From Adineta vaga (lineage: Eukaryota > Animalia > Rotifera), in contig CP075496.1 in the NCBI GenBank assembly GCA_021613535.1, forward strand, positions 2,480,001-2,544,000: 64,000 nt of DNA, read 5' to 3'. Shown here in pieces: positions 30,569 to 36,967 of the stretch; the stretch's first letter is position 1, and every line of letters begins with the position of its first letter. Under the pieces are notes generated by a model that did not search any database, was not told where the DNA came from, and saw only the letters and a program-made list of their open reading frames with translations. Position numbers and translations under genes: made by a program.

Positions 30569-33500
30569 ATGTCAATTTCACAACCTCCTGATGGTATTTA
30601 TTTTAATTTTTGTATCAATCATTTGTGTACATATGAAGTCTTGTTTAGATCCAGAAATAAGAAATATTATTGAGAAACTTGCAAGTTTTGTTGCTCGTAT
30701 GTGTAAATTACATGGATCAGTATAATCATTTACTTGTTTTTTTTTCAATCTTTAATCTTAGGTAATGGACCTGAATTTGAAGCAGCAGCAAGACAAAAAC
30801 ATGAAAATAATCCAAAATTTTCTTTTCTTCATGGTGGAGATTATCAACATTATTATGCATTTCGTGTTCAAGCAGAAAAAGCTAGTAATGATTTCTTAAC
30901 TTTATTCTTCATATTTTACTTATTTATTTCTATACCAGTGCTTCAACAACCACCCAATCCATTTCAATTACCGCCACCAAATATGCTTGCTCCACCACCT
31001 TCGATAGCTCATCATCCACCTCGACCAACATTACCACCCTTTTCTGGTCCACCTCCACCTCCTGGTACAGGTGGTCCACCACTTCCTCTTCCTTGGACAG
31101 TATGTTCTATCTTTACTTTATTTTTAAATCAATTATATTCTTTACAATTCATCTAGCAACCACCTCCATCGCATTTATTTCCAACTGGAGGTCCTCCACC
31201 ACCTATGCCAATGCCTCCAATACCACCACCAGCTGTCGTTATTGAACAAGCATTTCAACAACAAATTCAAGCTGCACAAGAACGTTTAAGACAAAGTGAA
31301 GTTAATCTTGCTGCACAACATGAATCAATGCAAATCACTAAAAAGTATTATTTCTTGTTTGCCACAACTTTTCCATAGAATTTTTTATTTTTCTCTGTTC
31401 GTTAGACAAAAGTTCAAGAAAATATTCAAGCTGCTCGACAAGCACGTATTTCTGCTCAAGCAGCTGAATCAAATATTGATATGAATGAAGTTGATCGAAC
31501 AACATCAGCAATTATTGAAACTTGTACAAAAGATAATATTACTGTAGGGACATTTCTCAATCATAAAAAATAAACTTTTTTAATATTCTATGAAAATATT
31601 GTTTTTAGAATGGACGAAATTGTATATTAAATTATAGTCAAACAACTATGCAAGCAGAAACAATTTGTTTATATTTAATCGATCGAATATATGCGCCAGA
31701 AGCAACATGTGATACTCGTCTTCATATAATTTATCTTGTCAATGATATACTTCATAATTGGTAAGATTGAAAACTTGAATGAAGTTGATTTTATTTATAT
31801 TTTGATTTTTGTTTTCTAGTATTCGAAAAGGTAACGATGAACTTCGTGTACAATTAAGTAGAATTATTGTTCCGATTTATTGTTTGGCTATTGATCAATC
31901 CAATGATGAACGTCGACAAAAATTGGTCAAGGTAGAGATATTAGTATAGATGGATAAAACATTTTCATGAGATTTATTATAAAATCTTTCTCCACATCCT
32001 TTCTCATACAGTTACTCGATCTTTGGGAAAAAAACAAATATTTCAACGATGATATTATGGAGGTAAAGAACAATAAAATGAATGAATTTTTTTTCAAATA
32101 ATAATCATAAACGATTATTTTCTTTTAGAAACTTCGGGATACTCACCAAGCAAAAAAACATTATGAAGTAAAATAATCGAATTCATTGTATTCTTTTATT
32201 TTCAAGTTTTTTCTTTTTTCTAATGAAAGGATGCAATTCGATTTGAATATGCTCCAATTATTGAACCCATTGAAGCTGGTCTCGATGAAAAATATGCTCA
32301 ACTTGCCCGACAACATGCAGAATTTGCTGTTCATATCCAATCACAAATTAATCAAATTCAACAACAAATTATTCAATTTCATCAAGTTCAACAACAAACA
32401 CCACCGCCACCACCACCTCCTCCACCTCATCTATTAAACAATGCTTTCGGTATGAGAAATCAATTTAATATTCCAATGAATCAAATTGTCTTGTTTTAAA
32501 GGTCCACCACTTCCACCCAATATGTTAACTCGAATGCCACCACCAACACAATCGACCAATCCAAATCAACAACCACCACCATTAATGTCACTAAATCCAT
32601 TTAATGAAAATAATCGAGATAATTCGAGTAAGTAGTCAACTCTAAAAAGAAGATCTTCTGTCACTTATTACCAAAGAACACTTACGAAAAATATAGAAAT
32701 AATCTATGAATTTCTTTTCAAGGTCATCGACCATCTTCAAACATGTACGATAATGCACCTCCTTCATTAATGAATATGTCTATGTCTCATTATGATAATA
32801 ATAATCAACATGATGATTATGGTAGTAGTATGAATACAAATATAGAACAACCATTTGATTTATATATGGTTACCAATGATATTCCATACTATGATCTACC
32901 CGCTGGTCTCATGTGTTTATTAGTTAAAGTAATAATTCGATATCATTGAAATTAGTTGTATTTACGTGTGACATGTTATTTTTAGGATGAAGATTGTGAT
33001 TATAAGTCAATGGATGCAAGAGATTTACGATTACCACCATCGACACTCATTACAGAACGATTAATAAATGCAGTAGAAAATTTTTATATGCCACCAACAC
33101 ATGAAACACCAAGGAATGCGTATGTGTATTTAGATATTATGAATTCAAAAGGAAGAAGAATCTACCTCTGTTTTCTTTTTTTTTCATTCTAGTGATGGAT
33201 GGGAACGCTTAGGATTATTCGAATATTATAAAATAAAGAATACACATAAGTTTTCCAAAGAACGTCTCGAAAGTTCTACAAAACATTCAGATAATAGAGA
33301 TAAACAACATCAATCTGAGCGAAATCGATCCAAAAGTTCATCAAGATCACGATCATCATCCTCCTCATCGTCATCTTCTTCATCTTCATCATCTTCATCG
33401 TCATCACCATCTTCCGCATCATCTTCATCATCCAAAGATAATTCACATAATAATAATAATAATACCAATAATCAGAAAAAACGATACAGGTTCATAACTT

Positions 33501-34165
33501 CTTTCTCTTGCTGTTCATAACATAAGTTCTTCTATTCATTCTTTGATTAGATCTCGATCCCAAACACCTCCACATCATAAACAACAATCAACAAAAAATC
33601 ATCCGCTAACAAGATCACGATCGCGCAGTGTATCTCCTCCTACATTTGGTTCAACATATGTACCTCATAGGTATTTAAAAAAGTTATCGAAATCTTTGAC
33701 AAAACAGAATGAGACTCTAATTAAAAAGTTAACATGTTTATTATTGCTTACTTATAGTTCATCAAGTGACAAACATCATCAACAAAAACTATCTGATTCG
33801 AATCTTGGTCATAAACTTCTTCAAAAAATGGGTATGATCATTAATGTATTATTGCTATTCTTTTTTCTAACTTCCAATAAACGATTTCAGGTTGGCAAGA
33901 AGGTGTGGGTCTTGGTCGACGTGAACAAGGTATTGTTGAACCTATTCAAGCCAGTGCAAGTGTAAATAATGAAGGAAAAGCTGATCAATACAAAGGCATT
34001 GGTCATGAAGATGATCCATTTGAACAATTTCGTAAACAAAAAGCGAAAGGTTATGTTTCACGTTTAATTGCTGCTCAAGCAGAAACAGTTGCTCGACGTC
34101 ATGAAACAACCGATGAAGATCCATTATTAACATCCGATCGTATCGATGAAAAGACTAAAAAATAA
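30569..34165 (+). CDS. CHERP: Calcium homeostasis ER protein (SURP, CID, RS-rich, G-patch splicing factor), many exons
   Basis: PPDDPEIRNIIEKLASFVARNGPEFE (SURP), RLHIIYLVNDILH (CID), [51 protein letters not shown] (G-patch), DDPFEQFRKQK. Confidence 0.93.
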
Positions 34166-34306
34166 AAATAAAATTCTTATTTTTCTCTTATATTTCGCTT
34201 GATGTGATTTGTTTATAAATCATTCTGTTTCCTTGATCTTGTCATACACAAATTCAATGTTTCCTTTTTCTTTTAGATCAGTAAAGAAAAGAATTCATTT
34301 TCTATC

Positions 34307-35336: not shown

Positions 35337-35918
35337 ATGGCATCGAATGAACAGACAACAACATCAACAGTAGCAGCAGCAGCACCAGCTAGTAACGCTA
35401 AAGTAACATTCAAAATTACGTTAACATCTGATCCAAAATTACCATTTAAAGTGTAAATATCACTCAATTGTTCTTTAGTTTAATCATTTCATAATGTTGG
35501 CTTTTCTTGATATTTTAGTTTAAGTGTACCGGAAAATACACCATTTACTGCTGTTTTAAAGTTTGCTGCTGAAGAAGTATATTTAGTCAAATTGGAATAC
35601 AATGAAAACGAATTTCTTTTTCATTTTAGTTTAAAGTACAAGCAGCTACAAGTGCAATAATCACTAATGATGGTATTGGAATAAATCCATCTCAAACAGC
35701 TGGTAAGAAAGAATAGAATATGTACTAAACATTACAGTGAGAGAAATGAATTCGAAAGTTACAAATCTCATATATGTAACACTTTACTTATTGTATAAAC
35801 TTATTTGACTAATAGATTATGAGATATATATATGAAAATGATGTTTATTTTAGGTAATGTTTTTCTCAAACATGGCGCCGAACTTCGAATTATTCCACGA
35901 GATCGCGTCGGTCATTGA
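35337..35918 (+). CDS. UFM1: Ubiquitin-fold modifier 1, 4 exons; not in the ORF track
   Basis: Spliced product ...[82 protein letters not shown]. Confidence 0.97.
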
Positions 35919-36076
35919 TATCGAAGTGAAATTTTAATGATTCTCTCCGTTCGTTTCTCTTTTTCTGGAATTTATTCATTGATTTTTTCAAATGAAATAA
36001 ATAACCATGAAAGAATCATATCTTATATTCATTTTTTATTAAATTAAATAAAAAAACTTCTTTCCCTACCGAATAG

Positions 36077-36967
36077 ATGAATCCATCATCTTCTCAAACA
36101 ACAATTTCTTCGACATTACCAAAATCTGAATCTGATGCTTATCAACTCGAACAAGAACATGTTCATAAAGTATACAATGAAATTGCAAATAGATTCAGTG
36201 ATTCACGTTATAAACCATGGCCACATGTTGCAGAATTTTTACAGACATTTGCCAGTGCTTCATATGTTCTTGATATTGGATGTGGAAATGGAAAATATAT
36301 GAATGTTAGAAATGATTTAACTATGGTAGAAAATGAAGACCTTTCTTGTTCTATTTGATTTCTTAAAATAGTAGATTGGTTGTGATCGAAGTGAAGGTCT
36401 TTTAAAAATCTGTCGTGATCGTCAATATCAAGTCTTTCTTTCCGATTGTATGACTATTCCTATAGTTAGCAATACATTCGATGGAGCGATATGTATTGCC
36501 GTTATTCATCATATGAGTACTGAAGTAAGAAGTAAATGTATAGAAAATCGATTTGAGAAAAAGAAAATCTTCTTTAGAATCGACGATTAAAAGCTTTACA
36601 AGAAATTGTTCGAATATTGAAAATCAACGGTCAAGCATTAGTTACTGTTTGGGCAAAAGAACAAGCAATTAATGAGAAGAAAAGTACATATGTTAGTAAA
36701 ACTATGAAATCATCTTCATTAACAGAAAATGAATCTTCAGCAACTTCTACGGATGATCAATTAATAATTCATACACCTCGAACAGAATTTCAACGATCTG
36801 ATTGTCTCGTACCATGGATAAAACCCAATGAAACACATCTAAGATATTATCATGTTTTTGTTCAGAATGAATTGGATAATTTATTAAAACAAATTCCAAA
36901 TATTGAAGTTATAAAGTCATTTAATGATGATGGAAATTGGTGTGCGATATTTCGCAAAATTGCTTAG
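36077..36967 (+). CDS. tRNA wobble-uridine methyltransferase, Trm9/ALKBH8 methyltransferase-domain-only (TRMT9B-like), 3 exons
   Basis: LEQEHVHKVYNEIANRFSDSRYKPWPHV, LDIGCGNGKY, IGCDRS, ICIAVIHH, VTVWAKEQ, DCLVPW, RYYHVF, GNWC; no RRM or AlkB domain. Confidence 0.9.

Follow-up and report, generated by a model that had tools for sequence, protein, structure and literature searches.

The 64,000-nucleotide (nt) stretch of the bdelloid rotifer Adineta vaga genome analysed here (GenBank assembly GCA_021613535.1, contig CP075496.1, positions 2,480,001 to 2,544,000 of the forward strand; hereafter the window, with positions counted from its first letter) contains four unrelated housekeeping genes that lie head to tail on the plus strand and encode, in this order, a CHERP-like protein, RPF2, UFM1 and a TRM9/ALKBH8-type methyltransferase (Table 1). 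The window is AT-rich (about 30% G+C) and its introns are short, with GT..AG ends. The gaps from stop codon to ATG measure 141 nt between CHERP (stop ending at 34165) and RPF2 (ATG at 34307), 91 nt between RPF2 (stop ending at 35245) and UFM1 (ATG at 35337), and 158 nt between UFM1 (stop at 35916-35918) and the methyltransferase gene (ATG at 36077). AATAAA hexamers are found at 34161, 34167, 35245, 35298, 35996 and 36047, and each downstream gene is preceded by a sequence resembling a 3' splice site: TTTTCTTTTAG, which ends at 34276, 30 nt 5' of the RPF2 ATG; TTGATTTTAG, which abuts the UFM1 ATG (boundary 35336/35337); and CCGAATAG, which abuts the methyltransferase ATG (36076/36077). From this layout, the coordinates of which held on re-reading, a first-pass annotation made from the letters alone had proposed a single operon of all four genes resolved by spliced-leader (SL) trans-splicing. 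The arrangement is more than a chance juxtaposition because six or seven bdelloid lineages share the acceptors without change, the four-fold degenerate sites of RPF2 being only 51-68% identical to those of A. vaga. A search of the 100.8-Mb A. vaga assembly (six contigs) for a second copy of the cluster found none.

Table 1. Coordinates of the features of the CHERP-RPF2-UFM1-methyltransferase region within the window
Feature	Coordinates	Strand	Evidence
Intergenic region separating CHERP from a divergent minus-strand Sina/TRAF-type gene (ATG 30193); probable site of the CHERP promoter	30194..30568		Open reading frame list; orthologous layout
CHERP-like gene (SURP/CID/G-patch), ~18 exons	30569..34165	+	Pfam, RNA joints
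CHERP 3' untranslated region (UTR) and short intercistronic stretch with U-rich tract and acceptor AG (34275-34276)	34166..34276	+	Contig ends, conservation
RPF2 5' UTR 3' of the predicted SL acceptor	34277..34306	+	SL on orthologous transcripts
RPF2, Brix domain, single exon, 312 aa	34307..35245	+	Pfam, RNA contigs
RPF2 3' UTR, the entire RPF2-UFM1 spacer; AATAAA 35298-35303, acceptor AG 35335-35336	35246..35336	+	Poly(A) tail
Conserved RNA hairpin enclosing AATAAA	35293..35330	+	Folds in seven lineages
UFM1, 103 aa; exons 35337-35452, 35519-35576, 35630-35702, 35854-35918	35337..35918	+	Pfam, RNA joints
UFM1 3' UTR, then U-rich spacer of 51-61 nt, acceptor AG 36075-36076	35919..36076	+	Poly(A) tails
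TRM9/ALKBH8-type methyltransferase, 262 aa; exons 36077-36325, 36375-36524, 36578-36967	36077..36967	+	Pfam, homologues

The names given to the four genes in the first-pass annotation agree with their domain matches and with the names of their homologues, the spliced genes having been compared exon by exon. The CHERP exons match the Pfam CID and G-patch domains, and the A. steineri orthologue combines Surp, CID, DUF7819 and G-patch. RPF2 matches Brix (E 9e-43), with the closest relatives in Adineta ricciae (91% identity), A. steineri (87%) and Rotaria (85%); an exact look-up of the RPF2 sequence of the window returned no match. The UFM1 exons match PF03671 (Ufm1), and the last exon ends in ...RDRVGH, that is, with the C-terminal Val-Gly before a short tail that the UFM1 family requires. 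Its 103 aa equal the length of the A. vaga record I4U23_017929 (P0307), the comparison being one of length, and the UFM1 cluster members listed are all genome-derived records. Bdelloid UFM1 begins with 13-23 extra N-terminal residues, many of them Ser, Thr or Ala, ahead of the conserved KVTFKITL (window 35337-35399); this extension differs in length among lineages and carries a 3-nt allelic indel at 35369 in A. vaga. As for the methyltransferase, exon 2 matches Methyltransf_11, exon 1 homologues bear the name ALKBH8, and the C-terminal homologues are the methyltransferase ends of proteins of 550-650 aa. The exon 1 search yielded 33 bdelloid clusters, all of them exon calls from genomic contigs that lack transcript 5' ends, and the exon 3 search among cluster representatives returned no full-length bdelloid protein.

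Transcription of the locus was followed in Logan assembled contigs from four A. vaga RNA runs belonging to three studies (contigs only, not raw reads); that these contigs represent RNA is clear from the removal of introns with GT..AG ends. All four genes are expressed and spliced in the data of the three studies. RNA joints confirm all three introns of UFM1 and 12 introns of CHERP, and four further joints would, judging by their count, correspond to the remaining CHERP introns. Among the 15 joints listed, none enters 34277, 35337 or 36077. Thus, the three AGs appear to be acceptors devoid of a cis donor, in line with the original impression that they have no obvious partner exon. CHERP contigs start at about 30502-30506, with no extra letters, in three runs and end at 34202 (run X1) or 34231 (runs X4 and X6), without a poly(A) tail and 5' of the acceptor at 34276; the latter end lies 12 nt 3' of a conserved TATAAA (34214-34219). 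For UFM1, two poly(A) sites, at 36015 and 36025, were identified in run X6 (tails of 16 and 11 A, not encoded in the genome), 14-24 nt after the AATAAA at 35996-36001.

The most telling 3' end is that of RPF2. The RPF2 contig of run X6 ends at 35337 and continues into 19 A that are absent from the genome; the tail is real because the genome reads ATGGCATCG at this point. Given that the next genomic base is itself an A, the poly(A) site is placed, with an ambiguity of 1 nt, at 35336/35337, on the acceptor AG of UFM1. None of the contigs runs across this boundary, although depth is high on either side of it. With the tail starting on the acceptor, the whole 91-nt spacer is RPF2 3' UTR, which means that UFM1 must draw its branch point and pyrimidine tract from within that 3' UTR. 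The distances from poly(A) site or contig end to the following acceptor are accordingly about 45 nt for CHERP (where the contigs have no tail), 0 for RPF2 and 51-61 nt for UFM1.

A poly(A) tail that immediately follows the acceptor AG of UFM1 was found in three independent cases: run X6 of A. vaga and two RPF2 transcripts of other bdelloids, L013 and L025. The 3' end of L013 reads ...CTCGATTTTTAG followed by A8 (junction read ...GATTTTTAG plus A8), with an acceptor-like TTTTTAG, and that of L025 reads ...CGAATTTCAG followed by a run of A (junction read ...AATTTCAG plus A9), with an acceptor-like TTTCAG. In A. vaga, AATAAA is located 33 nt 5' of the junction; the 50-nt 3' UTR of L025 and the RPF2-UFM1 spacer of the genomic contig L019 both lack this hexamer. 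The AG/ATG of UFM1 is invariant in seven lineages with a short spacer and recurs as TTTCAG/ATG in Didymodactylos; at the methyltransferase gene, four lineages have AG/ATG (A. vaga, A. ricciae, the bdelloid contig L018 and Didymodactylos). A genome-wide count of AATAAA-N(8-38)-TTTTAGATG, 217 occurrences against 159 in the reversed control, was uninformative as internal introns dominate it.

The RPF2-UFM1 spacer additionally contains a conserved hairpin, which has the AATAAA between its arms and terminates 5 nt 5' of the UFM1 acceptor AG. Seven lineages share its outer arms, TCGAGAA and TTCTYGA, the only difference being a C/T exchange that maintains G-C or G-U pairing, and the inner stems vary in sequence and length yet pair (AATAAATCA with TGATTTATT in A. 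vaga, AATAATAAC with GTTATTATT in L013; L019 has a nine-base inner extension). The folds have z-scores of -2.2 to -5.0 in all seven lineages. RNAalifold recovers the invariant 7-bp outer stem only, because indels in the inner stems prevent a formal count of covariation, and the case for inner-stem pairing accordingly rests on the folds of the individual sequences. That the element is under selection is indicated by the much lower conservation of the four-fold sites in the adjacent RPF2 coding sequence. The motif occurs once in the 100-Mb genome, which makes it a locus-specific element rather than a general processing signal; it is not present in the L025 3' UTR, and the CHERP-RPF2 and UFM1-methyltransferase spacers yielded no significant fold. 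In the third spacer, a block of the UFM1 3' UTR and the methyltransferase acceptor are conserved in A. ricciae and L018. Five bdelloid lineages share the block (GGRATTTATTCATTGA...GAAATAAATAACC, window 35964-36010), which can base-pair on either side of the AATAAA, but its fold is not significant (z -1.2).

The rotifer SL is 23 nt long, GGCTTATTACAACTTACCAAGAG (PMC3795323), and its trans-splicing in bdelloids was described in 2005 by Pouchkina-Stantcheva and Tunnacliffe, as related in papers citing that work (PMC3795323, PMC1925144). The A. vaga genome contains 58 SL RNA gene-like sites in which [T]GCTTATTACAACTTACCAAGAG is followed by a GT donor, compared to 0 in the reversed control. These sites often form divergent pairs with a spacing of 156 nt (an example is C1:2551158-2551338, L001:1500-1680), and they cluster on contigs 5 and 2; the variants C10A (at least 9 copies), C13A and C18G occur among them.

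Among RPF2 transcripts of other bdelloids, we examined L013 (JGI, 87% protein identity to A. vaga), L014 (Logan, 76%) and L025 (JGI, 72%). L013 starts with CAACTTACCAAGAG joined to ATTTATAAC, the former comprising 14 SL nucleotides (positions 10-23), with the ATG 38 nt further on; L014 starts with CTTACCAAGAG, 11 SL nucleotides, joined to ATTTG; and L025 carries the full 23-nt SL, then ATAAAAAGACC, then the ATG. In these three transcripts the SL junction precedes the RPF2 ATG by 11-38 nt. A fourth contig, L012, has a sequencing adapter followed by GAG/ATCG, and in all four the exon 3' of the junction opens with AT, as at window 34277. On the genomic side, TATAAATC and the RPF2 acceptor TTTYAG/AT are kept in six lineages. 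As L013, L014 and L025 all join the SL at the homologous acceptor, RPF2 is SL trans-spliced, at least in these relatives, at the very site predicted for it in A. vaga. The suggestion that downstream genes might receive a distinct SL variant did not fare as well: L013 (over positions 10-23) and L025 (over all 23 nt) carry the canonical SL, and neither RPF2 transcript shows C10A or another of the genomic variants.

For UFM1, JGI metagenome contigs were scanned for an SL tail 35-65 nt 5' of the conserved UFM1 codons, and one match was obtained, L017 (JGI24216J29974_1028610, 1-1011). In this contig, TTACCAAGAG, which comprises 10 nt of the SL tail, is joined to ATGGCATCG and heads an intact, intronless UFM1 with the bdelloid-specific N-terminal extension; the gene sits 32 nt 3' of a DHFR reading frame and is followed by an A-rich stretch. 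L017 is possibly a cDNA assembly chimera or a retrocopy of an SL-spliced mRNA, and either reading implies a UFM1 mRNA in which the SL was joined to the AUG at the position homologous to 35336/35337. By our own estimate, the probability of encountering this 10-mer by chance is about 3e-5 per sequence in the search range and about 1e-6 at the exact base. Use of the SL at the A. vaga sites themselves would follow by extension from these relatives. The earlier prediction of SL addition at all three acceptors therefore stands in part: the SL is present on RPF2 orthologues and, in partial form, on one UFM1 copy, and was not found at these sites in the A. vaga contigs.

The order of the genes is old. 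All four are found in order in A. ricciae, with gaps of 131, 84 and 149 nt; A. steineri and Rotaria magnacalcarata have CHERP-RPF2-UFM1; and among metagenomic bdelloid contigs L018 contains RPF2-UFM1-methyltransferase and L019 contains RPF2-UFM1. Didymodactylos has RPF2-UFM1 followed by a gene for a protein with an RRM and a methyltransferase domain, separated by larger gaps of 323 and 381 nt that retain AG/ATG. The order RPF2-UFM1-methyltransferase with AG/ATG acceptors is thus shared with A. ricciae, L018 and Didymodactylos.

Several side observations concern the same comparisons. In Didymodactylos carnosus (L015:4036-7605) the third gene encodes a 725-aa ALKBH8-like protein, of which the 260-aa methyltransferase of Adineta, judged from sequence, looks like a shortened derivative. 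The end of methyltransferase exon 1 and exon 2 remain in A. steineri (L021:7500-7920), fused into a UFM1 call of 160 aa, and Rotaria magnacalcarata (L008:9520-10700) has methyltransferase fragments with stops and no gene called; going by these remnants, the gene 3' of UFM1 is apparently eroding in some bdelloids. Finally, a contig of another bdelloid (L024, 1-1258, Logan SRR31189383) joins the CHERP C-terminus, a 162-nt spacer and RPF2, the latter with a one-base error in an A run; if the run is RNA rather than DNA, this contig would be an unprocessed dicistronic precursor.

Taken together, these observations suggest that RPF2 and UFM1 form the core of an SL-resolved polycistronic unit in A. 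vaga, an interpretation to which we assign a probability of roughly 0.6, with the methyltransferase gene as a probable third cistron. In this scheme, RNA polymerase II arriving from RPF2, or from a start further upstream, would continue into UFM1; the 23-nt SL would be trans-spliced at AG/AT 34276/34277 and AG/ATG 35336/35337, and probably at AG/ATG 36076/36077, so that it would supply the entire 5' UTR of the UFM1 and methyltransferase mRNAs; the upstream mRNAs would be cleaved and polyadenylated 45, 0 and 51-61 nt before the respective acceptors; and some of the polymerases would continue beyond the UFM1 poly(A) sites and so transcribe the methyltransferase gene. Co-transcription of the cistrons is what the junctions lead us to infer. 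The discriminating evidence is the junction geometry; the SL alone proves little, and its presence on RPF2 is necessary for the scheme, not sufficient, because more than 50% of bdelloid mRNAs are SL-spliced anyway (PMC1925144).

The proposal that all four genes constitute one unit is thereby narrowed. The depth of the contigs, which is a poor measure of abundance, is 10-40 for CHERP, 142-764 for RPF2, 144-774 for UFM1 and 17-52 for the methyltransferase gene. With its own 5' end near 30500 and its far lower abundance, CHERP is a doubtful member and may be a separate upstream unit. An internal promoter in the 3' part of CHERP that feeds RPF2 and UFM1 may exist and would fit the depths; hybrid operons with internal promoters are known in nematodes.

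A number of observations weigh against an operon. The differences in contig depth among the four genes are easier to explain by an internal promoter than by one promoter for all. None of the A. vaga contigs from the four runs carries an SL at 34277, 35337 or 36077, and none bridges any of the spacers, contigs of poly(A)-type RNA rarely keeping precursors. The RPF2, UFM1 and methyltransferase contigs start at 34367/9, about 35341 and 36113, respectively, each some 31 nt (one k-mer) from a likely allelic variant, of which the indel in UFM1, downstream of the start of the UFM1 contigs, is documented. Allelic variants thus probably broke the k-mer contigs, such that short SL-bearing 5' pieces were dropped, and we do not take the negative result to mean that the SL is absent. 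L017 has 10 of the 23 SL letters, and the letters 5' of them mismatch the SL. In A. steineri the methyltransferase gene is cut short, and in R. magnacalcarata it is degenerate or has not been called. The opposite-strand genes that flank the cluster are syntenic as well (Sina/TRAF upstream; a gene of 106-121 aa and a kinase downstream), and for this reason the conserved order speaks to the age of the arrangement and not to an operon-specific constraint; the expectation that gene order would be kept in related species was borne out across Adineta, Rotaria and Didymodactylos without discriminating between the alternatives.

Some of these points would be equally at home in a different explanation, under which the genes are independent, tightly packed units, each with a promoter inside its upstream neighbour and a short outron to which the SL is added, so that the transcripts overlap and no functional polycistron exists. 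We regard this as the less likely but most serious alternative. SL addition to over half of bdelloid mRNAs occurs whatever the gene arrangement (PMC1925144), the 3- to 35-fold gap in depth between CHERP and RPF2 and the roughly 10-fold gap between UFM1 and the methyltransferase gene are readily accommodated by separate promoters, bridging RNA was not seen in the contigs of the four runs, and operons have not been reported in rotifers (PMC7986045). However, independent units do not readily explain why a single nucleotide serves as RPF2 poly(A) site and UFM1 acceptor in three lineages, and the UFM1 promoter would need to lie within the RPF2 coding sequence. Moreover, the depths of RPF2 and UFM1 agree within about two-fold, and the spacers keep blocks that correspond to the poly(A) signal, the hairpin and the acceptor, with no visible promoter-like conserved block among them.

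That RPF2 alone is trans-spliced, with UFM1 and the methyltransferase gene transcribed conventionally from very short leaders, AG/ATG incidental and L017 a product of chance or a chimera, would agree with the lack of an SL on these two genes in the A. vaga contigs and with the short, mismatched SL remnant of L017, but is highly improbable in view of the invariance of AG/ATG at UFM1 (seven lineages and Didymodactylos) and its retention at the methyltransferase gene in four, the failure of any contig to run 5' of the UFM1 ATG into a genomic leader despite a depth of 144-420, the leaderless mRNA that a transcription start at the ATG would entail, implausible for an animal nuclear gene, and the position of the L017 10-mer exactly at the homologous junction, where its chance occurrence is expected about 1e-6 to 3e-5 of the time.

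If RPF2 and UFM1 do form such an SL-resolved unit, the coincidence of poly(A) site and acceptor raises the question of how the RPF2 3' end is made. It is conceivable, albeit rather unlikely in our judgment, that this end is produced by UFM1 trans-splicing itself or by coupled cleavage positioned by the hairpin, and not by ordinary AAUAAA-directed cleavage. Under such a mechanism, one precursor would give one RPF2 mRNA and one UFM1 mRNA, the output of a 60S ribosome-assembly factor would be tied to that of a ribosome-modifying ubiquitin-like protein, and Rotifera would have its first operon junction with a defined mechanism.

The closest parallel is provided by Ciona intestinalis, in which operons without intercistronic DNA have the layout '...AG AAAAAAAA' (Satou et al. 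2006, PMC1488885). It has been argued for Ciona that, without intercistronic DNA, the formation of both mRNA ends requires transcription across the boundary, and a minor class of C. elegans operons, the SL1-type, was noted to combine a Ciona-like layout with AAUAAA (PMC1488885). As in Ciona, the genes examined here are on the same strand, one SL would serve monocistronic and operon genes alike, poly(A) abuts the acceptor (at 35336/35337 and in L013 and L025), and L019 and L025 have no AATAAA, like most Ciona operons. Unlike in Ciona, only one of the three junctions is spacerless, the other two measuring 45 and 51-61 nt; A. vaga retains an AATAAA 33 nt upstream and a conserved hairpin precedes the acceptor; and dicistronic cDNAs are available for Ciona, whereas none was found here among the contigs. 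The phylum, too, is a different one, Rotifera.

In the SL1-type operons of C. elegans, as Williams et al. are said to have reported in 1999, the poly(A) site abuts the trans-splice site, AAUAAA lies upstream and the general SL is used. The A. vaga junction would be similar in all three respects, the general SL being that seen on RPF2 orthologues. In nematodes, however, this is a minor class beside the SL2-type, whereas no SL2-like leader was seen here, and we know of none in rotifers. In C. elegans, the spacers of SL2-type operons measure about 100 nt. Two of the A. vaga junctions, CHERP-RPF2 and UFM1-methyltransferase, are similar in that a poly(A) signal is followed by 45-61 nt of U-rich sequence and then by an acceptor, and in that the genes they join are housekeeping or RNA-related; these junctions differ in that the SL on RPF2 orthologues is the canonical and not a specialised one and that neither spacer contains a significant fold resembling the Ur element. 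With the bdelloid work of 2005 our data share the identical 23-nt SL and the presence of SL RNA genes in the A. vaga genome; that work, as represented in the papers citing it, described SL addition, not operons.

In the literature library searched, we found no published description of rotifer operons. The remark in the first-pass annotation that operons are not well characterised in this lineage agrees with a 2021 methods paper, according to which no rotifer operon had been reported (PMC7986045). In a 2025 paper, rotifers figure in a list of lineages with 'trans-splicing and operonic transcription', for which the authors cite general sources only (PMC12460157). What is probably new here is thus a candidate SL-resolved operon in a phylum without documented ones, which combines a Ciona-like junction with a conserved hairpin. 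If the interpretation holds, Rotifera would join nematodes, tunicates, chaetognaths and flatworms as animals with polycistronic nuclear genes, and such an operon would inform the question of whether SL trans-splicing has facilitated the rise of operons on repeated occasions. The RPF2-UFM1 junction also offers a compact and conserved test case for the question posed by Ciona, namely how an upstream 3' end is formed without separating DNA. In practical terms, junctions of this kind lead gene predictors to merge neighbouring genes or to overlook them, as illustrated by the 160-aa UFM1 call of A. steineri and the uncalled methyltransferase of Rotaria.

One minor observation concerns the CHERP-like gene. 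Exon 5 ends, before the donor at 31345, with five A (window 31340-31344) and runs two bases past the last codon, while the following exon starts in phase 0. In the RNA contigs of the three studies the run is longer by one A, and in A. steineri it likewise consists of six A. Probably the assembly has lost one base of the homopolymer here, or else this haplotype carries a frameshift.

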